This document shows positions 1,500 to 37,256 of a stretch of DNA of 64,000 nt, in pieces. The position numbers and the translations under genes are program-made. Location of the stretch: positions 186,001 to 250,000 of the forward strand of contig JAIVFI010000026.1 in the NCBI GenBank assembly GCA_025558095.1. Direction: 5' to 3'. Below the pieces are notes generated by a model. That model was given only the letters and a program-made list of their open reading frames with translations. It was not told where the DNA came from and did no database searches. Numbering within the stretch: position 1 is the first letter of the stretch; each line of letters opens with the position of its first letter. The DNA is from Hyaloraphidium curvatum SAG 235-1 (Eukaryota; Fungi; Monoblepharomycota).

Positions 1500-4400
1500 T
1501 CACGGAGGCGAAAACCCGGCCACCGAAAGGTTGTAGCTGAAGATGGCCCCCCACTCGACCTCTTGCCGCACTACCGTCCCGCTGCTCAAGGCAATATCCG
1601 CCATGTAGCGAGCCGCCGCCCCGTACAGCACCCCGCCCGGCCCCTGCATAAGGGCGACCCTGGGCTCCCACGCCTCGTCTTTCCGGAAGTTATGCAGGAT
1701 GGTGACGCTTCCGGCCGTCGTGACGCGGAACAAGAAACCCCCGTTGTTCGCCCCGCCGATCTGCGAAACCCCGTACAGCGCCCCATCCCAGCCGACGGTG
1801 AGCTGCACCGGCACGCTGGCGGCTTGGACGTTCGTGGCGATGATGGCCACCTTCGACACGTGACCGGAACCGATGTCGTACTTCCAGACGACGACTTCGT
1901 TGAGGAATTCGTACGACCCATCCCCGTATTGGAAGATGCGCCATATGCCGGTTCCGTAGAGGGCGCAATCCGGCCCGGACACGATGCCGCCGTCGCTGTA
2001 CGGCCAAAAGCCGTTATATGGGTTGTCGCGGAACTCGTGCAGCACAGAAAATACCCCGCTGGGAGTTAGACGGAATAGAAGCATGATGGAGCGGTCGCTT
2101 TTCGTCAGCCCATAGAGGCTATCGTCCCCAGAGCATCCCTGCACGACCCAGATCGGATTGCCCGCAGTCGAGGCATCATAGTTCAGGTTGAAGCCGAGGT
2201 TGGAGAAAACACCCGCCACCGAGAGACGGTACACGAACCCGCGTTCGTCCGAGGTGGACTGGTCCCTGCCCGAGACCCCGAAGATGTCCCCGTTCCTGGC
2301 CCGAACGAGCGGCGGGTACGTCCCATCGAAGGGCCACATCGGCTGCACCGCCTCGATGGCACCGGCATCGGCACGGAACCGGTACAGGGTGCCCCCGTTG
2401 TTGGCGGAACCCGAGAGGGTGCGGCCGAAGAAGGTCCCGTTCCCGACATGCAGCAGGCCCGCCTTGGACTTGTCAAGCACCGGCGAGCCCGCCCCGTTGT
2501 AAGACCCAAAGTAGGCGAAACGGGCAAAGGAGCCGCCCCAGCGGTCGAGCCGGAAGATGGAGCCGAATCCGTAGGCGCCAGACCCCAGGTAGACTGGTGC
2601 GCCGCCCGAGAGGGTGCCGTAGAGCAGGCCATCGTGTCCCAGGGTCAGCGCAGACGGATCGTAAGCGCTGCTGTCCAAGCGGCGGATAATGGAGAATGGA
2701 TGGGGCGTGGCAGTCGCCTGAAGGGGGAGCGGAGGGAGAGTTTAGGCTGGATGATCATGTGGACGGGAGCGGATCCCACCGTCCGGGTGAGCGATCTGGT
2801 GCGTGTTCTGGAGCTCGTGGTCTTTGCAGTCGCGGATGACGTCCCCGATATTGCAGAAGTAGTCGAGCGGGTCCGAGATGTTGCAGAGGGGGGAATTTCA
2901 AAGTAGATGCACCACGACGACAGGGTGCCGGTGTCGGAAATCTCGAAATCCGAGAGGTTCAGCCGCCAATACGCGGCAACTGCAGTGAGTCCACGGAACG
3001 TCGATAGGGACTGGGCCGGCCGGGCGGTCGCGGCCGGATTGCAGGTGAAGGGCGCGGGGGCGGAGTCGTCAAAGCGGGTGGAGTATGTGCGCAAGCTGAC
3101 GCAAGATTCGCGGAGCCGGTCGAAGAGGGCGATCTTGACCTGGGAATCAAACACCCCGGGGGAGAAGGACGGTGCCAACCTCGTCAGCTCGCCGGCCACG
3201 TCGCCGGGGTAGGTGTGGTTCCAGAACACCTGCACGTCGACGTCCGAGATCGCGCCCAGGCCGAAAGGAACCCATATCTCGCTCAGGGCCGTGCCCAAGT
3301 CGGGGATAGTCGCGCGGGGAGTGGCGCAGAAGGTTTCGAGACGGGGTGCCGTTTTCGATTGCTGACCACGGTCAATCGGTTAGCTCTTTCCCCGAGAGCC
3401 TGGCCAGCCACCCACCATAGATGCCGTGCGGGACCCGGTTCTGGTGACGCTGGTGGTTCGGCTCCTCGTGAAGGTGGGCGTTGCAACGGTCCCCACGGCG
3501 ACGCTGGAGCCCGCCATGCGCGTCGTCGAGCCCGCCGCGGGGCCGAGATCAAAGTAGATGCACCACGACGACAGGATGCCGGCGTCGGGACTCTCGAAAT
3601 CCGAGAGGTTCAGCCGCCAGTAGGCGGCGCCTGCAGTGAGTCCACGGAACGTCGATAGGGACTGGGCCGGCCGGACGGTCGCGGTCGGATCGCAGGTAAA
3701 GGTATCGGGGGCGGAGTCGTCAAAGCGGGTGGAGTATGTCCGGAAGCTGACGCAAGATTCGCAGAGCCGGTCGAAGAGGGCGATCTTGACCTGGGAATCA
3801 AACACCCCGGGGGAGAAGGACGGTGCCAACCTCGTCAGCTCGCCGGCCACGTCGCCGGGGTAGGTGTGGTTCCAGAACACCTGCACGTCGACGTCCGAGA
3901 TAGCGCCCAGGCCGAAAGGAACCCATATCTCGCTCAGGGCCGTGCCCAAGTCGGGGATGGTCGCGCGGGGAGTGGCGCAGAAGGTTTCGAGACGGGGTGC
4001 CGTCGTCGAGGTCTTGATTGTGGTTCATCAGCTTATTCCGACGTGAGCCTGGACGGGAACTCACCTTGAACGTCGAGCGCGCGCTGGTTTTGAGCAAACT
4101 GGTGGGTTTGCCGCTCGTGGAGCTGGTCGGCGGGATGGTTCGCGTGGAGCTCCTTGCCGGTGCCGCGGAGCTCGGGGTTCGCGTCTTGGTGGCTGTGGTA
4201 GAGCCGGTCGGCGAGGTTGTAGCCGAAACAAGGTCGACGAAGATGCACCACGATGACAGTGTGCCCTCATATACCCAAAGCCAGTCCGATAGGGACAGCC
4301 GCCACGTCCCACCGGCCGGCAACCCGCGGAACGCCGACAAGGCCTCGGCGGGCCGAGCCGTCGCGGCCGGATCGCAGGTGAAGGGTCCCGGGGCCGAGTC

Positions 4401-5605
4401 GTCAAAGCGAGTAGAATAGGAGCGGAACTCACCGCAAGCGCTGACCTGGCCAAAGAGGGTTATGTTGCGGCCGTCTGCAACTCTCGCAAGAGCCCCCGTC
4501 ACGTCGTAAGGGTAGGTGTGGTTCCAGAACACCTGCACATCTACGTCCGAGACGAGGCCGATACCAGGCGGGACGACGATGTCGCTAGTGACGGTGCTCT
4601 TGTCGGCAATGGCAGCGTTGGGGGTTGCGCAGTAGGTGCCAAGGCGAGTGGAGGTGGCAGAAGTCTGGTCCGGGTCAGCCGCAAAGAACGAAGAACGAAT
4701 CGCACGAACGCCAGACGGAGAACCCACCGAAGAAGTCGTGCGCGTGCCGGTTTTGGCCAAGCTGTTGGTGTTGCTCCTCGTCGAGGTCGCCGGCGAGGCG
4801 CTCCGCGTTCGACTCGTCGTCTTCGAGGTTGCGCTCGGCGTCCGACTCCGCGAGGAGCTTGTTGTCCACTTCGAGCCGGAAGTCGTTTTCGGGGTTGCGG
4901 TTGCCGACCGCGTGCTGGTCAGGCACTGGCAGGCCACGATCGGGTCGAACGCGGGGCATGGGGCCGTGACCGTGGCCGTCACGGTGCGGACCACGGTCAC
5001 CGTCGGCGCAACCTGCAAGTTGGTTGAATGGGGTGAGAAGTCTGTCGGGGCCTCTCTGCCTGGTATACCACCCACATTATTGGCAGCGAGGCGGACACGC
5101 GTCGTGACCACGATTGTACGCGTTTCCGTGACGGTTTCCGCAGGCAGCAGCGGGCAGCAGGCGGCCGCGTCTTCCCCGGGCGCGGCGGCGGCGAGAATTG
5201 TGGCCGACGGCGGGCATCGAGGGCACTCGTCGCGGCGGACGGCGCCGCCGGCGACTTCCGCACGGTCCGCATCGCGGGCGACCAGACCGGCGCCGGCCGT
5301 GCGCGTTACGGTGACGGTTCGCGTCCGACGCAGCGGGGGGCAGCAGCAGCCCGATGCCGCCGTCCTTGCGCGTCGCGTCAGCCGCGCACCACGTCCACTC
5401 ACCCGCATGCAGGTCCAGCAACCCACTGTGCGGCATGGGCGACGCCAATCGCGAGGAAGAAGAGGGCGATCAGTGCAGCGGCGGCCCCCGTCGGCCCGAA
5501 CAACCGGCGCGGCCCCCGCTCGCTCCTCCGCCCGCGTCCCGGGCCACGGGATCCCGCGGGGGGTCTTCCACTGCCGCGATCTCCCTTCGGAATCGTCCCG
5601 GGCAT
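1500..5605 (-). CDS. Secreted/surface modular protein copy A: signal/anchor, Cys/Thr module, 3 proprotein-convertase P-domain-like repeats with S/T linkers, C-terminal GloVer-like (LYGT) beta-propeller; 7 exons
   Basis: Hydrophobic AAAALIALFFLAIGVAHA; three SDVDVQVFWNHTYPxDV...TRFDDSAP...WRL..D...GTLSSWC modules; repeats LTLGHDGLLYGT, LTVGWDGALYGVS, LMQGPGGVLYGAA; canonical introns such as 4013-4064 and 5013-5075 join the frames. Confidence 0.85.
2900..4003 (-). repeat. Recent internal tandem duplication of a P-domain exon (period 651 bp)
   Basis: ~2900-3352 and ~3551-4003 are nearly identical, e.g. gatcttgacctgggaatcaaacaccccggggg at 3131 and 3782. Confidence 0.9.
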
Positions 5606-5844
5606 GAGCGTGCCGTGTGCTGATCGTGGAATGACTGCCGGTCGCCGATCGGGAAGTCCCTGCGCACGGGCACCAGGGACCTGGACCAGTGACGATGACC
5701 GATCCATCGCCGAACGCTGACGTCCGGACCCAAAAATACACTCGCATCCCTGCTTTCATTGCTCATCATGATCGCTGTGCATTGTTCTGTGGTATCCATG
5801 CAATCAGCGGGCGGAAATCGGACGAAGTTTCTGCCGATCTGTCG

Positions 5845-5864
5845 AGTCAGTCAGTCAATCAAAA
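5845..5864 (-). promoter_or_regulatory. Conserved upstream motif TTTTGATTGACTGACTGACT of copy A
   Basis: Reverse complement matches 11136-11169 upstream of copy B; both lie ~200-260 bp before the ATG. Confidence 0.55.
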
Positions 5865-6274
5865 CAATCGAGACGAGGGCGTCCAGAAATCGAAGATCGA
5901 CGCGGGCGGAGTCAGAGCGCCTTCGTGCGGCTGGCGGCCCGACGCCATCGTGAAGGAGTGGCGAGCGGCCCTCGCGGAAGCGGAGGCAAGGGAGTGGTCG
6001 TGATGGCCGGCGCCTAAACAACCCAGCTGGCACCACGCGACGTCGATTCAGTACGCGTGGCATGTTTTCCGACAGTTCAGCCGTCCCTCCGCTGAGTCGT
6101 CTACTCCATGCGTTTCGAGGTGCATGGCTGGTCGAACTGCGGGTCATCGGCAGACGATCCAGACCACGAGCCGAACTGACCGCCTCCAGCCGCCACCCCC
6201 CAAAGATTAGGCATCGCGGGCCGGCGCTCCGCGGCGCCCAGAGGCGGAGCAGGCAGCGAGCCTTGACCACCGAA

Positions 6275-7447
6275 ATGGCCTTCGCGGCGGGCAGCCGCGG
6301 GCCGCCGCCCCCCCCGCCTCGGCGTCCTCCGCTCCCCTCCCTCCTGCTTGCCCTCGCCCTCCTCATCGCGCTCCTGCTGCCCCCCAGCCGCGCCGCCACG
6401 CTTGACCCTCCTCCCCCGGCCCTCCCCCCGCGCTTCCGCTCCCCGCTGTGCCCGGCGCCCCTCTGCCTCCCCGCCTACGAGGCCCTCCACGCCGCCGCCC
6501 GCTCCTCCCCCTCGGCCCCGCTGCTCGTCCTCACGCAGACCGGCGGCTGGGGCAACCTGTACCTCGACCTCGCGCACGCCTTCGCCGCCGCCGTGGCCCA
6601 CGACAGGGCGTTCGTCCTCCGCATGGCCGGCCACGGGGCCGACGCCGTGGAGCCCGCGGGGAACGTGGACTGGCGCGGCGAGGGGTGGCAGCTGCCGGAC
6701 CCGCTCCCGCAGCCGGAGGTGCTGCACATGGATCGGGTGAACCGTTCGGAGAGGGTGTGGAGCGTGCGCGGGGTGGCCTCGCACACGGTGCCGGTATCGG
6801 CGTGGGACGCGGAGCTGCGGGCGCGCCTGGTCGAGCGCGGGCTGGATCCAGCGCGCGTGCCGGAGCAGTGCATGGTCGAGTACCTCGTGCAGCCGGCGGC
6901 GGAGCTGGTGGGGATGGTCGAGGGGTTCCTGCCGCAGCTGGCGCCCAACGGGGGGGACTATGCCGCGGTGCACGTGCGGACGGGGTCGGGGGAGGGTTCC
7001 GAATCGGGGTGGAATTGGTTCGTGTCACCCGCCGAAGCTGTCGCCACGATGCCGGGCTACATCTCCCGCGCGGTGGCCGATGTTGGGCTGCCCCCGTCGG
7101 CCAAGATCTTCGTCGCCGCGGACGACCCATCCGTGGGCGCCGGCCTCCGCGCCGCCTTCCCCGGTCGCGCGGTGGTCACCAACACCAAGCTCACGCTAAT
7201 GGATGGCCTGCACACGTCGCGGGGGGCGATGTCGCGGGAGGGCACCATGCTCGCGTTCGCGGACTGGTTCCTGCTGCTGGGGAGCAGGGTGATGGTGCAG
7301 GCGACCAAGTCGAGCTTTTCGACTTCGGTCGCGGTGCACCAGGGGAGGAACTGCACGCGGTTGGGGGGGATACGGAACACGCTCAACGGGACGGCGGACG
7401 TGAGGAGCTGTGTTCGGAGGTCGGAAGCCGCGGGGCGTCTCGCGTAG
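6275..7447 (+). CDS. Type II membrane fucosyltransferase-like glycosyltransferase (GT11/GT23/GT37/POFUT-type motifs)
   Basis: N-terminal TM; GGWGN; motif I AVHVRTG; motif II KIFVAADD; motif III AFADWFLL...SSFS; intronless. Confidence 0.75.
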   Translation: MAFAAGSRGPPPPPPRRPPLPSLLLALALLIALLLPPSRAATLDPPPPALPPRFRSPLCPAPLCLPAYEALHAAARSSPSAPLLVLTQTGGWGNLYLDLAHAFAAAVAHDRAFVLRMAGHGADAVEPAGNVDWRGEGWQLPDPLPQPEVLHMDRVNRSERVWSVRGVASHTVPVSAWDAELRARLVERGLDPARVPEQCMVEYLVQPAAELVGMVEGFLPQLAPNGGDYAAVHVRTGSGEGSESGWNWFVSPAEAVATMPGYISRAVADVGLPPSAKIFVAADDPSVGAGLRAAFPGRAVVTNTKLTLMDGLHTSRGAMSREGTMLAFADWFLLLGSRVMVQATKSSFSTSVAVHQGRNCTRLGGIRNTLNGTADVRSCVRRSEAAGRLA

Positions 7448-10400
7448 CAGAGCAAACGCTCGTTCGGATTGCTACGTTTGTAATCGTCAATGACAATGAC
7501 CTCCGGCGGCGTGGGACCCTGGTTGGCGCTCCTCCCGTCCTCTCTTGCATCTTTTTCTGTCCAACGTCCTGCCTCGTACCGGCGATCCCCTCCGTTGGGG
7601 CTGCAGCCGTTCCGACCTCCCGCTCCTTGGCAACCAGCCACTCCAGACGCCTCACCGCGGCCGACCACCTGGCGTGCTTGCCCGCCGCCGCGTCGTGCTC
7701 CGGATGCAGTTTCGTCACGGCCAGCTCGAACTTGCTCCCCGCCTTGAACTCCGCCACACGCAGCGACGGCCCCAGCCGGTGCAGCGCCGAGACCACGGGG
7801 GACATCGAGCGCCTGTACGAGAAGGTCCTCGAGGTCCCCGCCGCATCATCGGAGAGGAAAGCGGCGACGTCGTGCGGGAGGCTGCCCCGCGCGGCCCCGG
7901 CGGCCTCGCGCAGGGCCGGCCAGCCGGCCGGCTTTGGGCCGGGGTCCAGGAAGGAGCCCCCCGCGGCGCGGAGAAGCCGCAGGATGTGCGCGGCCGCGCG
8001 CTCCCTCTCGGGAAATGCTTCACAAGCGCGACGGCGGCGGCGGAGCGGAAGACGACATCCGTGCCGGAAGCCCAGAGCGCCAGCGACGCCTCGAGCCTGT
8101 CCGCCAGGACGGTGCCGTACCATTGCCCGCGGGCGAGTGCCGCGATCGCGCCGTCCCTGTCCGCTGCGATCCATTGCGAAACGCAGGCGTCTGCAAACTC
8201 GGCGGCGTCGGGGTCCTTCTCGCACGCCTCCAGCAGCTGCGTCAGACCGCCGGAGGCGCTGAAGCTGTCGCCGTAGAAGCCGATGACCCTTGAGCGGGGC
8301 GCGGTGCATTTTGCCCGCAGCGCCGGCCGCAGCTCGGTCCTCCAGAGGTCGAAGCGCAGGAAGATCTCGCGGAGGTTCCGGCAGCGCTCCAGCAGCTCGC
8401 CCCTCTTGCCGTCCAGTACCGCGCCGGCCACCTTTTTCAGCTCCTCGTCTGTCTCTGCCAGCTTCGCCAGGTATGCCACCGTCGCGACGAGTTCGTCCTT
8501 GGCCGCCTTGCCCCCCGCAGCCGCCGCTTGCGGCGCGGGGCGGCCGACCGAGGTGCTCGGCTGGTACCCGACCCGACCGCCCGATGGCACGCCTTTGGCC
8601 ACCGAGGCCCCCAGCCCTGCGCACGCAACCTCGAGCACCTGCGGGCGGCCCCGCGGCGATCGCCTTGCGCGCGATCGCGGCCAGCCTGTCCAGCTCCGTC
8701 CTCGCGGCGAGCACCCCGCACACCGCCTTCTGGATCTCCCCCCTCGGCCCCGCCGAACCTCCCTCGTTCTTGCACGGATCCAGCGCCAGTACGTCCAGCA
8801 GCACCACCGACTCCCCCTTGCCCGGCGCCCTGGCGCACACCGCCGCCGCGACGGCATCCCACCCCAGCAGCTCCAGCACCTTTGGCTCCGTCCCGATCCT
8901 CCTGGCCAGCGCCGCGGATCCCCGCCGCAGCATCTCCCCCGCCGCCGCGCGCGCGGCCTCGTGGGGGACGGCGAGCAGCGCCTCGGCCGCCGCGTCGGAG
9001 GGTAGCTTGGCGGCGCCGGCGGCCAGCGCCGCCGTCAGCAGGTCCAAAGCTTCCCCCTTGGCGGGGTTGTCGGGTGCGGCTTTGCGGAATAGCTCCATGG
9101 CGTGCGAAAGCAGCTTGGCCGGTACGCCGGCGCAGGCCTTGGCGGTCGATCGGGGGTCCGAGGGGTACAGGACGAGGGCCGTGTTGCGGTACTGGTACTC
9201 GATATGGGGATCGGGAGATCAGTGGAAGTTGGTGCATGGGAGGGTGGGCACCCACGTCGGTCCCTTCGTTCCCCGTAAAGTCCTCGTTCTCCTTGTCCGG
9301 CGACTCCCTGTCCCCGAAGAACGTGGCGTCCCCGCCGGCCATCTGGTCTGCCGCAAACTTGCACGCCGTCCCGCAGAGCACGGCGGGAGCCACCCCCTTG
9401 AGCGCTGCCCGCACCGTCGCCGTCCTGTCCAGGTACGCCTCGCCCCAGCACATGCCGCAGTTTCCGTAGTAGTCGTCCCCGTGGCCGGACGCGACCATGC
9501 TGATCTCGGCGGCGGCGACGTCGAAGCCCGCAGCGGGGTCGGAGAGCAGCCGTCACGCCGCGGCGTCCTTGCCCTTGAGCGCCGCCGCGCCCAGGTGGCC
9601 GAACGAGGCGGCCGAGTACTCGTGCTCCAGGGGGACGAGCAGACAGGCGTGCTTGCCCCTCTCAGCCATGGAACGGGCGATGCAGGAGAGCGAGGTCACG
9701 GCGGCGTCGTGCGTGGGGCCCGCGGGAGCCGAGGGCACGGCGCCCGCGCCGCGGCGGACGAGATTGTACACCAGCACGAGCCTGCGTCCGGATTCCAGGA
9801 GCTCGACCTCGTGCGTGCAGTCGGCGAAGAACCCGAACCCGGACGGGCGGAGGGCGCGCACGGGGTCCGCGACGCGGAAGCGCTTGGTCGTGCCGTTGTG
9901 CGTTCCGACGAGTGCACCGCCGCGCTGCTCCTCGGCGCAGGGCAGCTGCACCACCAGGGTGGCGAACATGCCGGGGGCTTTTTCGGAGTCGCGGTGCGGC
10001 CGGAAGAAGGAGCCGGGCTCGTATAGGATGAGCCGCCAGAGCTGGGCTTCCACTAGAACGTTCGAGTTCACACCTAGCGCGTCGGCCAGGGCTCGGGCCG
10101 ACACCTGGATCGCGGCGTCCCACTCGGGGTTCAGGATCCGCTGCACTGCCGGTGGCGCCTCCAGACTCGTCCTGACCGCAGGGTCCAGCAGCGTCTCGGT
10201 GCCCTTGCCGAATTTGCTGGCGGAGAGGTGCGGCCGCGGCAGCGCATCGGCGGCAAAGGGCACCAGCGGCAGCGGCAGCACGCCGAGCCCGTCGACCGAA
10301 ATGACCGGTGGGAAAGCAGGAACATCGACCTGGGCGGCGAAGGAGGCGTGGCTCGCGGCCGCCTTGAGGATGCGTGCGAGCGCCGCGACCGGAGCCGGGT

Positions 10401-10719
10401 GCGTCCCCTGGCCCGGCTCCTCCTCGTCGCCGTCAAAGTCGTCGAATCCGCCGACCTCGCGCGCCCATTCCTCCTCCTCGGCGATCGCAGTCTCCATTTT
10501 GGGCCTCTTGGCCGGCCTCTCGCCGTCGGAGCGTCGGGACGGCGGTCCCCCCCGGACGACGGGGTTCCCGGTCGCGGGCGGCACGTCGGCGGGGTTCAGA
10601 CGCCGTTCGGAGAAATCGCCGGTGGCGAGCATTGTGATAGACGCGTCGGCGGACGGGCGGAGTGGGTTTCGGGGCAGGCGAGTCTGGCGAAGGTTCGAAG
10701 GCGGCCATCGGACCGGCAC
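7383..10719 (-). pseudogene. Large 2OG-Fe(II) oxygenase-superfamily gene, disrupted
   Basis: LYEPGSFFRPHRDSEKAPGMFATLVVQLP...FFADCTHEV..RLVLVYNL, LEHEYS..LKGKD and FTGNEG motifs. It has an in-frame TGA at 9553-9555, an apparently mutated acceptor near 9203, and compensating frameshifts near 8645 and 8010. Confidence 0.7.
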
Positions 10720-11135
10720 CCGGTGAAAACCTGGTTGTAGCCCCTCGCGAAATTCTTCCTTATATCAACCCCATGAGCGCGCGAGGCCGATTTCGTTATG
10801 CCTGTTTCGATCTGGCCGTGCCGAAGCCTGGGCACGAAGACGTATCGTCCAGAGGTTGGAGCGTCGCCGGAAGTCAGTTTGATTGACATTAGAACATGCG
10901 AACACGCTGAATCCGAAGAGAACGTCCTCTCCTGATTGCCGATTCCGGGGCAAAGGGCCGATCGCGGGAGCTGTGGCTGTGGCGGGCGGTGCCGTCGAGT
11001 TCCTCGCCACGAGGCCCTCGGCCAAAATACCAACGGAATCGAGGTGCACATCAATTCATGAGTTGCCGTTTGGTGCCATCGGCGACGATTCCGAGTTTTC
11101 CCCTCAGCACGGACGTTTGAAGATAGGCTTTCCTC

Positions 11136-11169
11136 GATTGACTGACTGACAGATTTTGATTGACTGACT
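11136..11169 (+). promoter_or_regulatory. Duplicated GATTGACTGAC(T) motif upstream of copy B
   Basis: gattgactgactgac agattttgattgactgact matches the motif upstream of copy A. Confidence 0.55.
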
Positions 11170-11371
11170 TTCCTGGACCTGAAGTCGGTGCATCCTTCGC
11201 CGCGATCTATGCATGGATGGAGTGAAATGTCACAGCGAAATCATAAATGGATGCGCTGGAAGCGTATCGAAGGGCACTTGGTCTCCGGTAGCAACCTCGT
11301 CCCGCTTGCGGCCCAGCCAGGACTTTTCAGGCTGTCGGCCGCGCTCGAGGGGTGCCGACCGTCAGCACACG

Positions 11372-14300
11372 ATGCGAGCCTCACCGACATCGCCGGAACA
11401 AGATCGCGGCGCTGAATGGGCCCGTGGGGGATCCTTCGGCAAGGGAGGCGGCAGGAAGACGGGTGGCGGGGGCTGGCGCAGGCTCTTCGGGGCAACCGGG
11501 GTCGCCGCCGCCGTGCTCGTCCTCCTCATCATTGCCTCGGGGCCCGCCGATGCCGTGCAGTGGGTCGCCGGGCCGGCATGCGGGTGAGTCCTCGGCAGGA
11601 CGGGCCTGCGGGAGCTGACGCCGCCGCCGCGCCACAGCGCAACGCCCTCCGGCTGCTGCTGCCCCCCCCTCCGCCGCACGCGAACCGTCACCGTCACGCA
11701 CACCGCTGGCGCCGGCCTTGTTGCCCGCGATGCGGACCGTGCGGATATTGCCCGCGGCGCCGTCCGCCGCGACGAGTGCCCCCGATGCCCGCCGTCGGCC
11801 ACTATTCTCGCCGCCGCTCCGCCGGGGGAAGACGCGGCCGCCTGCTGCCCGCTGCTGCCTGCGGAAACCGTCACGGAAACGCGTACAATCGTGGCCACGA
11901 CGCGTGTCCGCCTCGCTGCCAATAATGTGGGTGGTATACCAGCAGAGAGGCCCCGACAGACTTCTCACCCCATTCAACCAACTGCAGGTTGCGCCGACGG
12001 TGACCGTGGTCCGCACCGTGACGGCCACGGTGACGGCCCCATGCCCCGCGTTCGACCCGATCGTGGCCTGCCCGTGCCTGACCAGCACGCGGTCGGCCAC
12101 GGCAACGACGACTTCCAGCACAAAGTGGACAACGAGCTCCTCGCGGAGCCGGACGCAGAGCGCGACCTCGAAGACGACGAGCCCAACGCGGACCGCCACG
12201 CCGGCGACCTCGACGAGGAGCAACACCAACAGCTTGACCAAAACCGGCACGCGCACATCGTCCTCCGTGGGTTATCCGGCGGTCGCGTGTGCAGTTTCCC
12301 GACTGACGCGGACCAGATTTCTGCGACCACGGCTCGGGTCGGCACCTACTGCGCGACCCCCAACGCTCTCATCCCCGAACTCGGGACGGTGTCAAGCGAC
12401 ATAGTCGTCCCGTCCGGCATCGGCCTGGTCTCGGACGTCGACGTGCAGGTTTTCTGGAACCATACCTACCCGAGCGATGTGTCGGGATCTCTGACGAGGG
12501 TCGCGGACGGCCGAAACGTCAGCCTCTTCAGCTACCTTTCCAACTGCGGCGTTTTCCACTCGTACTCCACGCGCTTCGACGACTCCGCCCCGGAGCCCTT
12601 CACCTGCGAGCATGCCGGGGCAGCGCAGCCCGTCGAGCCCCTTTCGTCGTTCCGTGGGCTCGCGGCCAGCGGGACATGGCGGCTGACGCTGATCGACTCT
12701 GCGTCACGGGATGAGGGCACGCTGGCGTCGTGGTGCATCTTCTTCGGGCTCGCGTCTGCGTCGACCTCGGCGACCCGCTCCACGCCAACGGCACCGGCAG
12801 GGAGCAAAACCAACAGCGCAACCAAGACGAGCTCACGGACATTGTCTTCGGTGGGTTCTCCGGGGTTCGCGCCAAGCACGTTTCATCTGAACACTCCAAC
12901 AAGACTTCTGCGACGACCACCCGCCTCGGAACATTCTGCGCGACGCCCAACGTTCAAATCGATCCCTATCTTGGCACGACGACCGATATCACCGTCCCCT
13001 CCGAAATGGGTCGCATATCCGACGTCGACGTGCAGCTCTGGTGGTCGCACAACATGCCGTCGGTCGTCTACGGGAGGTTGACGAGAGTTGTAGACGGCAC
13101 AAGTGTCAACCTTCTGTACGGAACCTCGGACTGCTGGGTTTACCACTCGTATTCCACTCGGTTCGACGACTCTGCGCCCGGACCCTTCACATGCGATCCC
13201 GTCGCGACCGCGCGGCCCGCAGGCAGCCTGTCGGCGTTCCTCGGATTGCAGGCTGGCGGATCGTGGCAACTGTGGCTGGGGGGCGGCGTTGGCAATGCTT
13301 TCGGCACCCTGAATTCGTGGTGCATCTACTTCGGGATCGCCCACTCGACATCATCGCGGACCGGCACAGCCAGCCCCACGCGGACGCGGACACCGACCTC
13401 GACGCCACCGGCGAAGAGCACCTCGCGGAGCGGCACGTCAACCACCTCGACGCGGAGCATAACGAACAGCTTGCCCAAAACAAGGACGCGTCCAGCCTCT
13501 TTAGTGGGTCCTCTTCGGTCGTTTGGTCGCATTTGTCGGCTGACCCTGGAGAAGACTTCTGCAACCACCACTCGTCTCGGCACCTACTGCGCAACCCCTA
13601 ACGCCCTCATTCCCGACCCGGGCAACATGACGAGCGACATTGCCGTCCCACCCGGGGTCGGCCTAATCTCGGACGTCGACGTGCAGTTATCCTGGAATCA
13701 CATCTTTCCCTACGATGTTACCGGGTCTCTCACAAGGGTGGCGGACGGCCGGAACATCAGCCTCTTCCGCAACCCCACAAACTGCTTCTATGGGGATCAC
13801 TCGTATTCCACTCGGTTCGACGACTCCGCCCCCGGGCCCTTCACATGCGAGTCCGTTGGGGCTGTGGCGGCACGGCCCGAGGAGGCCTTGGCGGCCTTCC
13901 GCGGGCTGCCGGCCGGTGGGACGTGGCGGCTGTCCCTCAGGGACTTGTGGGCCGTCTATCAGGGCACGTTCTCGTCGTGGTGCCTCTACTTTGAGCTTGT
14001 TTCGGGGACCACGTCGCGGACCGGCAGCACGAGTTCCACGCAGACGCGGACGTCGACAGCAACCGCGAAGGTAACCAGCTCAAGAACGCGCACCAAGTCC
14101 GCAACGCGCACGGTAAGACACCGTCCGGCGCAATGCGATCCCAGCTGACGGGGCCACCACCAGACGACTGCCACACCCCAGCCGCCATTCTCTATCATCC
14201 GCCGCTTCAACAGCACCGCGTGGGATCCCTCCGCGATGACTCTCGGCGATGATGGCATGATCTACGGCACCCTCTCCCAAGTCGGGGTCGATCCCTCAAC

Positions 14301-15351
14301 TCCCTCGGGCCTCATCTTCCGGATGGGTCCATCTGGCGGCTCCTACGAGCACCTGGCCCAGTTCAACAGGTTTTTGGAGGGTCATTTGAGTCTGCGCTGG
14401 TCCAAGGCGGGACTGGTGAACGCCGGTAATGGGGTCTTCTTTGGACGCACCCTCTTTCGCTACACCACCTACCCAGATATGGGGGGGAATCTGTACCGCT
14501 TTAGCGCCGCGGACCGTTCGATAGGACCCGTTCAGTGGTTGCCCGGCTTCGATGGGACCTACCCGCCGCTGGTGTACGCCAGGAGCGGGGACTTGTTCGG
14601 AGTCTCGGCTGGCTATTCCTCCGGCCAGCAGGGTTTCGTGTTCCGTTGCTCGGAAGCTGGCACTTTCTCCAACCTCGGCTTCTCGTTGAACTCTGAAGCT
14701 TTGTCTCCAGGCAATCCGATCTGGATCGTGCAGGGATGCCCTGGGGACGATAACCTCTATGGGCTCACGGAAAGCGACTACAACACGCTTCTATTCCGTC
14801 TGACACAAAGCGGGGAGTTTTCTGTGCTGTACAGCTTCTATGACGATGACTCCAGCTTTTGGCCGTCCATTGAGAGCGGCATCGTACCTGGGCCAGACTG
14901 CGCCCTCTATGGTACCGCCATGATGCAGGAGCGGGTCGAACCCTACACCGGTAAACTGGTTGTCTGGAAGTACGATATCGGCTCGAATCAAGTGTCAGTC
15001 GTGGCGACCATCACGGACTACGAATCATCGGCCGGCGTGGAGGCGCAGCTCACCGTGGGCTGGGATGGTGCACTGTACGGGGTTTCTTACGCTGGCGGGG
15101 CGCACGATGGGGGTTATCTGTTCCGCGTCACGACGGCCGGGAGCTACACGACGCTTCACAACTTCCGGGCCGAGGAAGCGTGGGAGCCCAGGGTCGCCCT
15201 CATGCAAGGACCCAACGGCGTGCTGTACGGGGCGGCTGCCCGCTACATGGCGGACGTCAGCTACAACAACGGGACGGTATTGCGGCAGGAGGTCGAGTGG
15301 GGCGCCATCTTCAGCTACAACCTTTCGTTGGCCGGGTATTTGCCTTCGTAA
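11372..15351 (+). CDS. Secreted/surface modular protein copy B: same architecture (3 P-domain-like modules + GloVer-like beta-propeller); 7 exons, ~1220 aa
   Basis: Introns at 11584-11637, 11927-11987, 12267-12316, 12851-12903, 13504-13554 and 14113-14163 give a continuous ORF collinear with copy A. Confidence 0.88.
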
Positions 15352-17504: not shown

Positions 17505-18690
17505 TCAGGACCACTCCTTGCAAACCACTTTGTGGTCCGTCCACGCGGCCCTCTGGCATCCAACCCCGCAGTAGCGCGTCACCTTGCACCCGGAACAGCG
17601 GAGGAGCTTCTCGCCTTCTGCCCCGCATCGATCGCACGTGTCGGTGATGGCCCCGCGAATGATGAGCTTCTGTTCTTCGCGTAGTCCGGCACCATGGCGA
17701 CCCGAGTTGTCCATTCCGAGCACCAATGAGCAAATGGCGTCCACCATCCAGAGCGCGGCTTCGAGGCCGGCTACGGTCTCTTCGGTCCAACGGTTCAGCA
17801 CGGCAAGGTGGAAGCACATCGGTCGCAAGTTCCCAGCGAACAGGGGGGCCGGGCACAGCTCATCCACCTTGCCGGCAACGCGGCAGCGAGCAGCCCAGGG
17901 TTTCGGGTTCTCGATCACGCAGAGGACCAGCGCCGCCGCGGAATCCGTGCCCAACTGCGCGAGCGCCTCCGAGAGCTCCTGCTCGGAAATGCTTTCCAGG
18001 GCCTGCAATCCACCAATGTGGTCGACGACGGCGCAGCGTTCCCAGAAAGGCGGTGCGTGCAGCATTGCCAGCGCCAGGTCGTCGAGGAGCGCGGGCGTCT
18101 CTGCTACGCGGCGACGCACGGGCCGCGACAGCTTCGCGAGGCTGGAAAGAACGTAGAGCGCCATTCGCATGGGCGATCCGAATGCGTTGTTGTACTGGGT
18201 GCTGGCAGAGGGCCAGCTGGGGTTCGCGGGCTCCTTGATCCAAGGCTGCCCGGCCGACGCGTCGACCGCACCCCAGGCGGCACGTCGGCCTGCTGAGCGC
18301 AAACCGACGTGATCTGCCAAGGCACCGCGGACCGCCGGCCAGCCCCTTCGGAACACGTCGAGCGCCGCCTGGGCCGCGGCTTTGTCGGGCGCGCGGCCGC
18401 GGGGGACGCCGCCGTGTGCGGCGCGCCATTCCGCGTCGGGACGAAGCTCCGGGTCGGTCAGCAGCCGCAGCGCCTCCCACGCCGCGTTGAATGCCTGGAT
18501 AGCGCGGGTCCCCGCGGCCTCGACGGGCCGGAACGCCTCGCGCGAGTCGCCCGGGCCACAACGCCGCGGCGAGTTCCGGCCCCGCGGCACCGGCTTCTGC
18601 CAGGGCATCGCACGCCGTCCGCACGATCGCGTCGATCATGTCCGTTTTCCATCCCGACGAAGGGGTACCGGGCTCAGCATCGGCCTCCAT
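17505..18690 (-). CDS. MYND-type zinc-finger protein (possible frameshift near 18540 between the natural-looking N-terminus and the main ORF)
   Basis: C-terminal CDRCGAEGEKLLRCSGCKVTRYCGVGCQRAAWTDHKVVC. Confidence 0.8.
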
Positions 18691-18974
18691 CGTCAATCCC
18701 GGGGCAGAGCAGAATCCCTTGCCATTGTTCATTCCGCGCGTCACTCGAGCTCCCGAACACGCACAGCTTCCTCTCACTTTAAGTCAGGCCCTCCTTTCAA
18801 TCGTTTTAAATCCTTCGCGGCCCGATGGCGTTGACATGGGACCACTTTCGGTTGGAGGACTTCGCTCTGCCAAGGGTGACGGCACGATGCGACTGCTTCA
18901 CCAACGGGCGATGCATTCGAGGGAAAAGGTGCGACAGACGGGACGGAATTCTACCTCTCTTCCTCGCAAACGCA

Positions 18975-19379
18975 TCACGTGCAAATGGCCATGTGATCCG
19001 TCCACGCTGCCCTCTGGCATTCGGCCCCGCAGTACCGCGTCACCTTGCACCCGGAACAGCGGAGCAGTTTGTCCCCCTCCCTTCCGCACCGGTCGCACCC
19101 GTCCGGGATGCTGCCCATATCCGGCGCCGCCATCTGCGCCCGCACAGCGGCGCCATTGGACCCGCTCGTCAGCGCGGGCACCAGCGAGATAGAGACCAGC
19201 CCGTGTGCGGTGTTCATGGCCGCAGCGACGGGTTCCCGGACCTCGGGGGTCCACCACGAGCAGCGCTCGACCTGCCCCGCCAGGTTGGCGACGGCGCGCG
19301 CGAGAAGCTCGCCCGGACATTCTCCCGTGCGTTGCCGGACGACGGCGCAGTGTTCCGCCCAGGGCTTGGGGTTCTCCAT
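18975..19379 (-). CDS. Short, 5'-truncated MYND-type zinc-finger paralog
   Basis: CDRCGREGDKLLRCSGCKVTRYCGAECQRAAWTDHMAIC; it begins at the ENPKPW motif that is internal in the paralog. Confidence 0.7.
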   Translation of the reverse strand: MENPKPWAEHCAVVRQRTGECPGELLARAVANLAGQVERCSWWTPEVREPVAAAMNTAHGLVSISLVPALTSGSNGAAVRAQMAAPDMGSIPDGCDRCGREGDKLLRCSGCKVTRYCGAECQRAAWTDHMAICT

Positions 19380-20425: not shown

Positions 20426-23116
20426 CTAAACCACGCGGTTGTCCCTCGCCTCCACTCCCGTGGCCCCTCCCTCGACCTTTATCAGCTGCCCCGGCACGAT
20501 CCCCGACCACTCATTCCCCACCACCTGCACCCCGCTGCTCCTCGTCACGAGCACCTGCCCCCTCTCCGCGGCCCCGACGCCGTCGGCCCGCCTGTTGCGG
20601 AACCCGTTGCGGGCCACCACCGCGTCCCCCGCGGCTCCGATCTCCACCGCCGTCCGCGGGAACTCGACGAACTCGTTCCCCTCGATCCGCACCCCGCGAA
20701 GCAGCGGATACGACGTCGGCGCCCAGTCCGCCCCCTTGGCCCCGCTCCACACCACCCCCAGCCCGTCGTCGAGCTTGTCGCACCGCTCGAACCTGCACCC
20801 GCGCACGAAAAAGTCGAAAATGCCGGTGCCCTCGGCCCACGATCCGGGCCTGACGTCGGCGGTGATGCTCAGGGCGCGCTTCTCGATCCCAGTGAAGCAC
20901 GAGTGCTCGATGCCGCCGCGCTCCATCTGGAAGAGCACGCCGCGGGAGCGGTTCGAGTGGCAGTGGAGGCGGCGGTAGACCACGCTCTTGGTGGCGTTGT
21001 CGCGGTGGCTGGACGGCGATTGTTAGCGCGCGATCCTGCAACCTGGCGGGCAGGCAACCCACTTGAAGACGATGATCTTGTCGTCGCTCGACCACCAGAC
21101 CTCCCCGTTTGGCCCCGTCCACCCCTGCGCCGGCATCGGCAGCGCCCCGCCTTGCAGCCCGACCGTCCACCCGTTTGACGCCCACTCGGGCTGCCCCGTT
21201 ATTGTCCTGAACACCCCCGTCGGCGAGAAATCCTGGTTCCGGAACTCGAGCAGGTCCCCCTCCCTCACCGCGATCCTCCCACGCTGCCAATCCTCCAGTC
21301 GCAGCCTGCTGTCCCCGCGGCGCTCGATCCCCACCACGATGGTCTCGTGGCTGTTTGAGCAGTCGTCGCCCTGGAACCCGGCCTCGGCGTCCTCGACATG
21401 CACGTGGCCGTCGGTGCCGATGATGTTGATGGCGTCGGCGGCGGTCGAGATCCGGCGCGTCAGGGCGGGGACGCGGAGGTGCACGACCTCGAGGGTCGAG
21501 GAGTTGCGCAGCGCGCGGGTGGCGTCGCTTGCGGGGACCAGCCTCGCCCTCACGGCACCGGGGGTCGGCTCCTCCACAATCCGCGCCATCTCCTCCACCG
21601 TGGAATTGTCCAGCGCCCCCACGGTGAAGTTGGTCAGCCTCAGGTCCGCCGTCCCCGGCCGCGCCGCGAGCGCCATCCCCGGCGCGCCCCAGACCGACAC
21701 CATGTCCATCCAAACGTCCCTCGTGCGGACGATCTGGACCGCGTGGCCCTCGTAGGTAAAGTGCCGCACGAGGTACAGCGCGCCGACGGTCGGCGCAGGC
21801 CAGAGCCCGCGGAGGAGGGTGACGACGACGGTGTTGTTCGTGCCGACCGCGCGGTCGTACTGGGGTTCCATGCGGAGGAGGATCTCGTCCATGCGCCAGA
21901 AGGAGCCGATCCGGTTCGGGTCGGGCAGGCCGACCGTCATGGTCTCGGGGTCGACCTTGTGCATGTCGGCGATCCCACGGATCGTCGAGAGGTCGAGGAA
22001 GGGGTGGTCCAGGAAGCGCATCCGGATCTGCTGGTCGCCCGTCCCCGCGCGGCTCGACTCGGCCGAGAGCGCCCAGAGGTCCTCGATCCTCACGAGCGAA
22101 GCCAGCCGCCACCTGGCGAAATCCCAGTCGATTTGGAGGTCCCGCACCAGGACCGACCGCGATTCCTCGAAGCTGACGAGGGCGTTGAAAACCTTGGCCC
22201 GGCTGAAAAGCCACACCGAGCCCCCGCCGTCGAGGGTGAAGTTGGCCAGGCCGCGGAAGGCGAGCGGCCGGTCCGTCGCGAAGCGGTACACCCCGCGCCG
22301 CACCACGAAGCGGCACCCGCGCGCCGACGATACCGCCGCGCGGCAGTCGACCACTGCGCGCGCCACGGCGTTGTAGTTGTCCGGGTTCCCCTCGTCGAGG
22401 CCGTATTGCGAATTGAGGTCCACGACGATCTGCAGGGCCGGGTCCGGCTGCGCGGGGAAGGGCAACGGGAAAGAGGCGTAGGAGGGCTGCTGCGCGGAGG
22501 GCGTTTCGAGCACGGGGCAAGGGGGTGCCGGCCGCTTCGAGGTGTTTTCATACCACGAGCGCCAGATGGGCGGGCCGCGGGGCGTTGCCGACGGGGACGG
22601 GAGGGTGTGCGAGGGATAGGGGGTTTCGTTGTCGTCGTAGCCCGACGTGCCCGATGGCGGCAGCACGACGGGGGTTGTCGGGGCGCCGGCGATGCCGAGG
22701 GCCGTTGCGAGAGGCGCCGAAGTGGGCGTGCCCGTGAACGACGCCCCGCCGGCCGGGGCGGGGCCGGAGGGAGAGGGAGTTGCCTGGGCAGGCTGAGCAG
22801 CAGCTCCCGCCTTCTGCTGCGAGAGCACCACGGCGGTCGGCACGGCGATTGCTGCCGCCGCGACGGCGCACGCCGCGGCGATGAACCACGGCCTTTTGTA
22901 GAATGGCCTCCTCGGTGCCGCGCCGGCGTCCGCCACCGACACGCCCGACTCGCTGTCGACGCCCTTGCCGGCGCCGGCCTTGTCGCTGCCGTCGAGCGTG
23001 ATGTCCTCGAGCGACGGCGGCGACGGCGGCGACGGCGGGGACGCGGACCCGCCGCCGGGCGCCCGCGACACGCCATCGCCGCCCGGCGCCGGCGGGGGCG
23101 TTGCCGATTCCGCCAT
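20426..23116 (-). CDS. Type II membrane right-handed beta-helix protein, GH110 alpha-1,3-galactosidase-like
   Basis: TM WFIAAACAVAAAAIAVPTAVVL; P/S/T stalk; ADAINIIGTDGHVHVEDAEAGFQGDDCSNSH and NRSRGVL motifs; one intron ~21009-21063. Confidence 0.7.
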
Positions 23117-31226: not shown

Positions 31227-33184
31227 TCAGGGCCGGATGGCCTGGATCTCGGGCACGATCTGGTCGAACGTCGGCCGTGCCGCGGGGTCGCGGTCCCAGC
31301 ACCTCCTCATCAGCCTCACCAGCGCCGGCGGCGCGCCGCAGCCGGCGGGAACGGCAGGCCGGAGGTCCACCGCGGGATCGAGGATCCGCCGCAGGATCCC
31401 GGAAGGAGCCTGCTTCAGCTTCCGCACTTCGTGGTCGAAGGGCTCGAACCCCCGCGACGCCGCCTGGTAGCACAGCATGGCGAACGCGTACACGTCGCCC
31501 GGCTTCCGCGGGCGGCGCACGATGTTCTGGGTGTGGCGATCGTACGATTCGGGCGGGATGAAGATCCAAGTCCCGACATTGAGCTCGATCCCGCTGAGCG
31601 TGCGGTCGAAGCGGAGGCGGGCGCCGCCGAAGTCCGCGAGCTTGGCCACGGGACGGCCACCCTCGTCGAAGACGAGCACGTTGGAGTTCTTGAGGTCGCC
31701 GTGGACGACGCTCTGGGCGTGGCAGTAGCGCAGGCCCTTGGCGACGTCCGCGAGGATCGACAGCCCCACCTCCCAGTAGTTGGCGTCCCTCTTGCGGTCC
31801 CACAGGAAGTGCAGCATGTCGCCGGCGGCCAGGGGGCAGGCCGCACGGCAGGGGCTGTCGGACCAAGCAAGAAGTGGGAGAACTTGAAACGGCCAAAATC
31901 AGGCACGGACGCACAAACAGGAATGAAGAACCCACTGTTCTCGTGATCGCCGATCGCGGTCCACATCCGGATTTCCCTGTCGAATACGGCGGGATCCAAG
32001 GGCCTCCAGTTGGGGTCGTGCAGGTCCGTTCGCTCCCGCTTCACGGCGACGGCCTGGCCCCGAAACTGTCCCACGGCCGCCTCGCCTTGGCCTCCTCTAC
32101 CGAGTATCCGGGCTTCAACGGGGCAATCGATCTCTGTCGGGTCGTCCAGCTTCTTCCCGAAATACGCAGATTCCCGGAGGCGCAGCTCCCTCTTCAACTG
32201 CTCCCGACGGACCACGTCGGCGACGAGATCGGGGCCGGTGAAACCCGCGCGATTCCGGGCAGCCGGGTCGAAGCGGCCCGTATTGCCGAGAAAGACCTGC
32301 AGCATGGCCTCCTGGCCTCCGGTGCAGGCATGGTGGAACGGCGTGTTGCCCTCCTCGTCCGGGATCGTTGCGTCAACGACACCAAAGAGGTACGAGGCCA
32401 GCTCGAGGTGGCCACTGCGGACGGCCATGGCGAAACCCGTCCGCCCATCCCGGTCGCGGTCGTTGACGTCGAAGGCGACGGCTCGAGGGAGCATCTGTTC
32501 GAGGACCAAATCCGTGTGCCCCTGCGCGCAGGCTGCGATGAATCCGAGCGGGGTGACGCCGACGCCATTCGCGAGCATGTGGACGACTGCGTCGGCGAAC
32601 CCGGTGCGGCACGCAATCTCGAACGGTCCAGGTGTTCCAGGTCGTACGTCGGCAAGGTCCGGAAAATGCGAAAGCAGTACCGCCAGCGCGGCCAGTTTCC
32701 CCGGCAGACGCTGCGATATCTCCGCCGCGTTGCATGCTAGGTCCAAAGAGGATGATCCACGACGTTCCCTCGCGCGAGGGTCGACCCGCTCTCCCTGATT
32801 GAGCAGCTCCGAAACGACCTCGGGCCAGCCGCTGCGCGCGGCCAGCATGAGCGGCGTAAAGCCTCCATCGTTGGCAGGATCCGGCTCTATCCGCGGCCCC
32901 AGAGCAAGGAGCGAACGCACGACAGCGACGTGCCCCTCGCGGGCAGCCAGATGGAGAGGGGTGTTCCCCGACTTGCCGCGCAGGTTCACGTCCGTGTCCG
33001 CCCTCCTGACGAGGATCTCGGTCGCTGCCAATGCCCCGTTCCACGCCGCGAGATGCAGAGCCGCGAATCCTTCGTCGGGGGTCCCGGCGGCCCCGGGCGC
33101 GTTCTGGTCCGCTCCGGCGGCAAGCAGCTCGGCCACCGCGGGCGCATCGCCATTCTTGGCCGCCTCCAGCAGCAAAACGTTCAT
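31227..33184 (-). CDS. Ankyrin-repeat + TKL-type protein kinase (non-RD)
   Basis: Several GxTPLHxA-type ankyrin repeats; GRGGQG, VAVK, HGDLKNSNVL, ADFG, DVYAFAM, CW..DP..RPTF; intron 31883-31935. Confidence 0.9.
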
Positions 33185-33318
33185 CACCAATGGGATTCGC
33201 AACGGATTTCCGCCCTTCCCCGTCGCGCCAAGGAGCCGAGACGTGGCGAGCGATCGACGTCTGAGAGTCAAAGTCAGCGCGCGCAACGCCACTTCCTTCC
33301 GGGGGGGACGGTGGCCCG

Positions 33319-35817: not shown

Positions 35818-35923
35818 GAAGCAGAGTCTTGATAAGCCGATTGACTAGGCGCGAGGCGGAGTTCAGCGTCACGGCGCGCGACAGCGCGGACCCTTCTCCC
35901 ATCGTCTCCACCGCACGTCCGCG

Positions 35924-37256
35924 ATGTCGTGGAGCCAATCGACCTCGTCCAGCAGCACCGACACCAAGCTCGAGACGGGCGGCGGCCCGGCGCGGACGTC
36001 GACGACGTCGCAGTCGAGCAGCTCGTCGTCGGCCGTCGCCGTCGACTTCTCCGGCATCGCGCTCCTCCTCGTCGGCGCCGCCGCGGCCGTCGGCTACTAC
36101 CTGGTCCGCAGGCGGCGGGGCGCGCAGCGGAAGGCCGCGCCGCCGGCGGACCGCGGCGCGGATCTCGAGGATTTGGAGCGGCTGCTGCGGAGCCCGCGCG
36201 ACGAGGAGCCGCACCGCGATGGGCCGCCGGCGCCGCGCCCGGACATCGGGGACGGCTCGCGGCTGCACGAGCTCGGCCATCTTTCCCGGCTGGAAGCGGG
36301 GGCACTTGGCGGGGGTGCCGCGGGCGCAGTCTCCCCGGGAGTCCGCTTGCCGATCGATCCTGCCATGGTGATCCCGGCTCGTAGCATCCGCTACGACACC
36401 AGGGACAAGCTGGGCCAGCCCGGCGGCTTCGGCACCGTGTACCGCGGGGTGCTTTTCGACGAGCAGCACCCCAACGGGCGCCCCGTGGCCGTCAAGGTGC
36501 TGAACGACGGAAGCGCCATCGACGCCTACAGGGAGTTCGACAGCTGGACGCGCCTGGGCCACGACAATGGTGGGGATCGCCCGCCCGGCACCCGCACGGC
36601 GCCCCTCACCCGTCCATACAGTGCTCCCGCTGATCGGCATCTGCGAGGACCCGCCCATGCTCGTCTCGGAGATCGCGGAGCACGGCAACCTGGGCGATTT
36701 CGTGCGGCATGCGAACCCTCCTCCCGACGCCGTCACGGGCCTCCTCGCCGGCGTCGCTGGCGGGATGGAGTACCTCCACCGGCGCAACGTCCTGCACCGC
36801 GACCTCAAACCCGACAACGTCCTCGTGACGTAACGCAACGGCCGCCCGAGCCCGCTCATCTCGGACTTTGGCCTCTCGCGGTCCGCGGACGGCATGGGGT
36901 CCGCCACGCGGCGGCGGCCGGCCGGAACGCCGGGGTACGTGCCCCCCGAGCTGCGCAGCGGCGGGGTGTGGTCCAAGCAGGCCGACGCGTACTCGTTCGG
37001 GATGATGTGCTACGTCGTCGCCACGGACTTTGCGGTGGCGCCGCAGGGCGTTCCCTTGCCTCCCGCGAGACCGCCGAGGGTCTCGGACGCGCTCTGGGAC
37101 ATCGTGCGGAGGTGCTTGGACGCCGACCCTTCCGGGCGCCCCACGTTCGACGAGATCGCGAGGAGGTTCCGCACCGAGGACGTGAGGTTCCTGGGGCCCC
37201 CCGCGCAGGGACCCGCAAACCGCATAGGCACCTCTCCCGTTGTAACCGAGTACTGA
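35924..37256 (+). pseudogene. TM-anchored TKL kinase paralog with in-frame TAA
   Basis: TM GIALLLVGAAAAVGYYLV-RRRR; kinase highly similar to 34960-35817; intron 36570-36621; TAA at 36831-36833 between HRD and DFG where the paralog has Glu. Confidence 0.8.

Follow-up and report, generated by a model that had tools for sequence, protein, structure and literature searches.

Tandem P domains joined to a GloVer propeller in a head-to-head gene pair of Hyaloraphidium curvatum: candidate multivalent binding proteins from a genome-wide module kit

The GloVer repeat (TIGR03803) is known from bacterial choice-of-anchor proteins, which are exported, form seven-bladed propellers, and often carry extra Ig, TIG, or PKD modules. 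P domains (PF01483) occur in kexin- and furin-type proteins (Kex2, furin, and Aeromonas ASP), the P domains of kexins packing against the protease domains, and also as protease-free tandem repeats of a 140-residue long form in bacteria. Among fungal proteins, adhesins and flocculins, together with the proteins of zoosporic fungi that bear carbohydrate-binding modules (CBMs) or dockerins, combine a signal peptide with binding domains on Ser/Thr stalks, vary through repeat duplication and gene conversion, and reuse a small module on many secreted proteins. Here we describe two paralogous genes, A and B, of Hyaloraphidium curvatum, a non-flagellated relative of Monoblepharidomycetes whose lifestyle has been called unclear (PMC6899921). 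They lie head to head in a stretch of 64,000 nt (the window; positions 186,001 to 250,000 of contig JAIVFI010000026.1, here C26), and each unites P domains and a GloVer propeller in a single protein. The combination seems to be undescribed, both of its parts being known bacterial-type surface modules.

With a probability of roughly 0.6, A and B are secreted or wall-retained, non-catalytic, multivalent binding proteins of an adhesin- or lectin-like kind, in which a chain of domains on glycosylated stalks would bind extracellular polymers with avidity. The computational analysis establishes their domain content, their intactness, and the lack of catalytic features, and the N-terminal segment encodes secretory entry.

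Both genes consist of seven exons. Gene A occupies 1500..5605 on the minus strand (exons 5605-5403, 5364-5076, 5012-4728, 4664-4065, 4012-3416, 3361-2780, and 2717-1500), and gene B occupies 11372..15351 on the plus strand (exons 11372-11583, 11638-11926, 11988-12266, 12317-12850, 12904-13503, 13555-14112, and 14164-15351). Their introns, six per gene, are all of the GT-AG type, measure 38-63 nt, and sit at homologous positions, and neither reading frame is interrupted by a stop. The script-built exon models predict products of 1,257 aa for A (stop at 1500, with an alternative in-frame ATG upstream, at 5707) and 1,219 aa for B (stop at 15351), which are 64% identical over 1,195 aligned residues and share one layout: a signal segment, a Cys/Thr module, three P domains with Ser/Thr stalks, and a seven-bladed GloVer propeller. 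The original prediction of two divergently transcribed paralogs of about 1,200 aa with the same architecture is thus borne out by intact models. Introns 5 and 6 of A coincide with those of the public model P0002, and introns 4 and 5 of B with those of P0047. Since the public annotation breaks B into two models (P0047, a partial P-repeat protein, and P0001, the propeller) and truncates A, the full architecture is missing from the protein databases. Profile searches and structure predictions were run exon by exon, and on the partial public model P0002, not on the joined spliced proteins.

The last exon of each gene encodes the propeller, which extends to the protein end (1500..2690, minus strand, in A; 14191..15351, plus strand, in B; 59% identical to each other). 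TIGR03803 matched the two exons with E-values of 8e-36 and 5e-35 (121.6 and 118.9 bits, curated cut-off 44) and four repeats each, whereas Pfam yielded no match for this domain. The AlphaFold model has seven blades, the number expected beforehand (predicted local distance difference test score, pLDDT, 85; predicted template modelling score, pTM, 0.89), and superimposes on a GloVer cluster with a template modelling (TM) score of 0.82. The last-exon domain of A and B belongs to TIGR03803, and taken whole the two proteins are atypical of that family: unlike the bacterial proteins, A and B are encoded by spliced eukaryotic genes, lack a C-terminal sorting signal, and have their propeller joined to P modules, which no bacterial match showed. 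Beyond this genome, GloVer homologs come from bacteria or from metagenomes without a taxonomic assignment, with about 30% identity, and for both the P and the GloVer modules the nearest ESM Atlas clusters consist to 83-100% of bacterial members, counting those with a recorded taxon, in agreement with the earlier description of bacterial-type parts in a fungus. The approximately unbiased (AU) test did not separate one from several acquisitions of the GloVer genes (p-AU 0.62).

The solved structures closest to the propeller are tied at the fold level and include lectins, virginiamycin B lyase (Z 27.7), CylK, lactonases, integrins, and WD40 proteins; the PLL/PHL lectins reach a TM score of about 0.6. 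Columns kept across 37 homologs hold Gly, Tyr, Phe, or Pro. No conserved catalytic cluster was found in this 37-row alignment, in which His, Arg, Lys, and Glu stay below 60% in every column, and three Asp columns at 67-75% correspond to repeat-turn positions, two of which are not kept in B. Because the conserved columns lack a polar catalytic set, a binding role is favoured, as had been supposed from the sequence.

Exons 4-6 encode one 140-residue module plus a stalk each and are symmetric phase-0 units. The modules are located at 4233..4646 (A1), 3551..3994 (A2), and 2900..3343 (A3) on the minus strand and at 12335..12751 (B1), 12922..13332 (B2), and 13573..13992 (B3) on the plus strand. PF01483 matched B1 with 23.7 bits (gathering cut-off 21) and B3 weakly, with 17 bits; B2, A2, and A3 gave no match and A1 was left out of the scan, all six modules being 52-90% identical. 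Paralogous modules elsewhere in the genome score up to 36 bits. The AlphaFold model of B1 is a jelly roll (pLDDT 97) that fits the furin P domain (Z 15.4, root-mean-square deviation 1.7 A, 116 residues aligned), well above the next unrelated jelly rolls, and the Aeromonas ASP P domain (Z 11.8), which the P-module profile also finds in the PDB at an E-value of 2e-5; in the ESM Atlas, B1 falls into a bacterial P-domain cluster (0.98). Taken together, the models and profiles identify the repeated module as a predicted P domain with a galactose-binding-like fold, three per protein, as originally proposed. No S8 catalytic domain was found in either complete gene model, which confirms that the proteins carry no protease domain.

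The P-module profile retrieves 24,548 representatives, those with names being bacterial. An initial word search came back empty as the relatives sit in much longer proteins, and the notion that the module has no relatives was rejected on this result. Protease-free tandem P repeats are common in bacterial surface proteins, contrary to the premise of the original prediction that P domains normally accompany kexin/subtilisin proteases. Several bacterial matches contain between three and six P domains without any Pfam-recognised protease (P0049 consists of six P domains with nothing else recognised), and some named relatives of the modules carry type IX secretion system (T9SS), PKD, or Ig parts. 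Like these bacterial proteins, A and B have the long form in tandem and an FDD...P insertion; unlike them, each module occupies a phase-0 exon with a Ser/Thr stalk, contains two conserved Cys pairs, and is followed by a GloVer propeller. The genome also has three ordinary kexin genes (S8 plus P, on contigs C21, C33, and C17), whose P domains share the fold and form a separate class: they lack the insertion, and they accompany an S8 domain, whereas A and B have three P copies each. The P modules score 28-78 bits against the best bacterial domains vs 1-18 bits against the kexins, and in the best tree they are nested among bacterial domains, away from kexins.

Exon 1 (5403..5605, minus strand, in A; 11372..11583, plus strand, in B) provides a basic leader some 36 residues long, a hydrophobic segment of about 20 residues near residues 35-65, and an Ala-x-Ala motif ahead of a conserved mature start. 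By sequence and hydropathy it is a predicted signal peptide or signal anchor, and the Ala-x-Ala motif is kept in a paralog on contig C10. No hydrophobic segment was detected beyond the N-terminal one (no other hydropathy window of B exceeds 1.6), and by hydropathy neither C-terminus has a transmembrane or glycosylphosphatidylinositol (GPI)-like tail, both proteins ending a few residues past the last blade. The N-terminal half of the earlier signal/anchor claim therefore stands, and a C-terminal anchor is absent. With no second hydrophobic span, a membrane receptor was rejected, and the word "receptor" in the original prediction has to be dropped, there being no C-terminal membrane span or cytoplasmic domain. 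Exons 2-3 (4728..5364, minus strand, in A; 11638..12266, plus strand, in B) contribute a Cys-Cys-Pro / Thr-Val module together with the first Ser/Thr stalk. This module has no Pfam match and is present at five loci of the genome. The four stalks per protein contain 42-63% Ser+Thr and zero acidic residues. Within the Cys module (5215-5310 in A; 11690-11790 in B), the last residues of a variable stretch, just ahead of a conserved Cys-Pro-x-Cys-Pro-Pro, are Arg-Arg or x-Arg in 5/5 copies; this could possibly, and speculatively, be a kexin cleavage site between disulfide-linked halves.

The two genes have diverged unevenly. Exons 2-3 are 90% identical between A and B and intron 2 is 97% identical, whereas the other introns are 51-63% identical (shuffled baseline, 46%); exons 2-3 with intron 2 thus appear to be a gene-conversion tract. 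Modules A2 and A3 share 90% of their amino acids at a synonymous divergence (dS) of 0.07 and would represent a recent exon duplication. The ratio of nonsynonymous to synonymous substitution rates (dN/dS) between A and B is 0.15 for the Cys module, 0.26-0.41 for the P modules, and 0.46 for the propeller (strands 0.32, loops 0.57), with a range by region of 0.15-0.63; being pairwise, for two sequences, these estimates have little power. Positive selection was not detected, pairwise dN/dS being below 1 in every region and in the loops. In the propeller, the b-c loops, which we take to line one face in the model, are 41% identical and hold 18 of the 22 indel columns, compared with 71% identity outside the b-c and d-a loops; the P modules vary in three loop patches. 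The loop variation would fit either diverged specificity or relaxed constraint, and no dedicated diversifying mechanism is shown by the A/B loop comparison.

The P+GloVer combination was found in no other organism searched, which agrees with the earlier statement that no described family has it. A GloVer repeat occurs in none of the 150 best P-module proteins, and a P module in no GloVer match from other organisms. The partial model containing P3 and the propeller, used as a query, retrieved no outside protein covering both parts (coverage <=61%), and among five P-module-rich bacterial genomes only one also has GloVer, in separate genes. As the searches were limited by word seeds, a length window, and the top 150 matches, this pattern does no more than suggest absence elsewhere.

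Scans of the 31.9-Mb, 55-contig assembly placed the pair in a larger set, as the original prediction had advised by calling for a search of family size. The P module is matched 35 times, at some 25 loci, the copies being 25-70% identical to one another, and besides the window pair P modules are joined to trypsin, CEMIP-like, LamG, EGF, and HpiC1-like domains; accessory binding modules are usually appended to diverse domains. GloVer repeats are present in eight genes, namely the window pair, a second pair on C16, and single genes on C10, C17, C32, and C35. The C16 pair (C16:590120-601450) is also head to head, about 1 kb apart and 82-85% identical, with the reversed domain order: a signal peptide and two GloVer propellers come first, and beyond a long Ser/Thr stalk and some 200 aa of unrecognised domain a single P module forms the C-terminus. 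Given the reversed order, P and GloVer were probably joined twice. Just beyond the C16 minus-strand gene, two weak P-like modules lie on the other strand. The head-to-head arrangement of A and B, earlier regarded as a system of its own, is real, and rather than standing alone the pair is one of the products of a module kit that spans the genome.

The closest relative of the window pair is the C10 paralog (C10:1-2097), with the same leader, Cys module, and propeller type and without P exons; its propeller seems to lack the first 100 residues, and the gene is cut at the contig end. The C17 gene (L042:1368-2621) is an intronless, stand-alone signal peptide plus GloVer gene that adjoins a metallo-beta-lactamase-fold-like open reading frame (ORF), and it looks like an unmodified bacterial-type gene with host-like GC content at third codon positions (GC3). 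At C32:536001-544300 the Cys module and several GloVer exons precede an alpha/beta-looking C-terminal domain of about 250 aa, and at C35:281001-287400 two GloVer propellers (92% identical) on a Ser/Thr stalk precede two Cys-rich repeats. Pfam gave no match for the extra domains of the C16, C32, and C35 paralogs. Branch-point-supported acceptors just upstream of P modules are all in phase 0 (17/17), though many of these exons are related by descent and the 17 acceptors are not independent events. Together with the symmetric phase-0 exons 4-6, they provide a mechanism for P-module shuffling. Other arrangements of P modules include a trypsin-fold domain plus P module at C39:349993-351500, which may be a pseudo-protease, since the residues expected for the catalytic His and for Gly-Asp-Ser-Gly-Gly seem changed, and oppositely oriented pairs at C31:531738-536891 and C43:899-9251, suggesting that inverted duplication of P-module genes recurs in the genome.

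As to how A and B would work, we infer secretion, glycosylation, wall retention, and a ligand. The stalks would serve as O-glycosylated spacers, the Cys/Thr-Val module may retain the protein in the wall or matrix or oligomerise it, and one propeller face together with the P modules would bind extracellular polymers, that is, glycans or proteins of substrates, of other microbes, or of the own wall, with A and B presumably differing somewhat in specificity. The modules may have come from bacterial surface proteins and then gained introns; the P module and its stalk would have come to form a symmetric phase-0 exon, duplicates of which were inserted into numerous secreted proteins. The A/B pair would have originated by inverted duplication, after which gene conversion could have homogenised exons 2-3 and an exon duplication given rise to A2/A3. 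The resemblance to fungal modular adhesins would be one of design and not of membership, as A and B, unlike Als, Epa, and Flo, lack a GPI signal and any PA14, Als, Flo11, CBM18, or dockerin domain, and their binding domains are C-terminal and bacterial-type. Several points weigh against this explanation. The P-module fold matches CBMs only at Z 7-8, and a jelly roll alone is no proof of glycan binding; exon 1 may encode a cleaved signal peptide or an uncleaved anchor; and the literature search found no paper mentioning TIGR03803 and no function for bacterial GloVer propellers. On the side of origin, a clade of the P modules with fungal kexin P domains was not rejected (p-AU 0.44), and the bacterial rows of the P tree were chosen with a fungal profile; for these two reasons, bacterial transfer of the P modules is likely and is not proven by the tree.

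Other explanations account for parts of the same evidence. A variable recognition system, sensing or capturing bacteria or other cells and generating specificities by inverted pairing, exon duplication, and gene conversion, would explain why change is concentrated in the propeller b-c loops and three P-module loop patches, why module exons are shuffled, and why a second inverted GloVer+P pair exists on C16. We nevertheless consider it decidedly unlikely, since this architecture exists in two copies only, dN/dS is below 1 in all regions and loops, it is the N-terminal chassis rather than the binding domains that conversion has homogenised, loops outpace strands in most proteins, and there is no signalling tail. 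The earlier epithet "diversifying" thus retains weak support from the one propeller loop set that holds most of the change, and finds none in the copy number and the dN/dS values given above. Were the P modules instead protein-protein tags of secreted enzymes, the GloVer proteins could organise an extracellular complex in the manner of dockerins and scaffoldins. The spread of P modules over diverse secreted enzymes would suit such docking, as would the packing of kexin P domains against protease domains and the common use of propellers as protein-binding platforms; yet the identity among P modules is looser than one shared interface would suggest, P modules are absent from most GloVer genes, and no partner was identified, so that we regard docking as improbable.

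Still more doubtful is that the propeller is an enzyme, lyase- or lactonase-like, to which the P modules would target substrates. Virginiamycin B lyase, CylK, and lactonases are indeed among its structural neighbours, and P modules are joined to enzymes elsewhere in the genome, but these matches, of 10-15% identity, are at the fold level and no better than those to lectins, integrins, and WD40 proteins, and the family alignment is devoid of a conserved polar catalytic residue. The split public annotation of B and the truncated one of A might lead one to suspect a modelling artefact, with the propeller and the P-repeat part belonging to separate or decaying genes. This is very improbable in view of the canonical introns, six per gene, whose positions match between the paralogs and whose phases are compatible, of the lack of stops over 1,200 codons, of purifying selection throughout, and of the public model of A, which links P3 to the propeller via the same intron.

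About 5.8 kb, occupied by two unrelated genes, separates the starts of A and B, and the pair therefore shares no short bidirectional promoter. This spacer (6272..10719) lies outside the duplication and contains an ORF with an N-terminal hydrophobic segment (about 6272-7447, plus strand) and a 2-oxoglutarate (2OG)-Fe(II) oxygenase-like gene (about 7383-10719, minus strand). Contamination was ruled out by the introns, the eukaryotic neighbours (a MYND finger and kinases), and host-like GC3. Two tandem minus-strand copies of a MYND-finger family are found at 17508-19379, and a related plus-strand piece at 959-1268 (69% DNA identity, inverted); with such inverted pieces on either side, the inverted duplication may have exceeded the two genes. 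Farther along the window, a type II membrane protein with a long repeat-like ectodomain, possibly a beta-helix, and no Pfam match is encoded at 21023-23116 (minus strand), and three clustered kinases with differing N-terminal modules (ankyrin; RCC1-like repeats plus a membrane span) at 31227-37256, two of them in tandem and 72% identical.

Intronisation and domain fusion of bacterial genes are reported to be common in chytrids and Gonapodya (PMC11291939), and because transfer, intron gain, and fusion are already known in early-diverging fungi, the surprise of the present case is limited. The part of that account of xenologs considered here does not mention Hyaloraphidium, P domains, or propellers, nor does it describe a single module being reused, at the level of exons, in tens of genes; the literature search found nothing relevant on protease-free P domains or on exon shuffling of acquired domains. 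In H. curvatum, two bacterial surface modules appear to have been turned into movable exons, reused across the secretome, and joined in two orders, so that the P+GloVer combination would have arisen by exon shuffling in one poorly known fungus. Being compact and well folded, the modules suit a ligand search, whose answer would also bear on the thousands of bacterial proteins that share them. A bolder and unlikely possibility is that they form a lineage-specific, exon-shuffled recognition kit, in which bacteria or polymers of theirs would be caught by P/GloVer proteins with divergent binding loops, and secreted proteases and glycan-active proteins would be directed to that target through the P module they share. 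If true, this would explain part of the Hyaloraphidium lifestyle and would for the first time assign a function to protease-free P repeats and to GloVer propellers.

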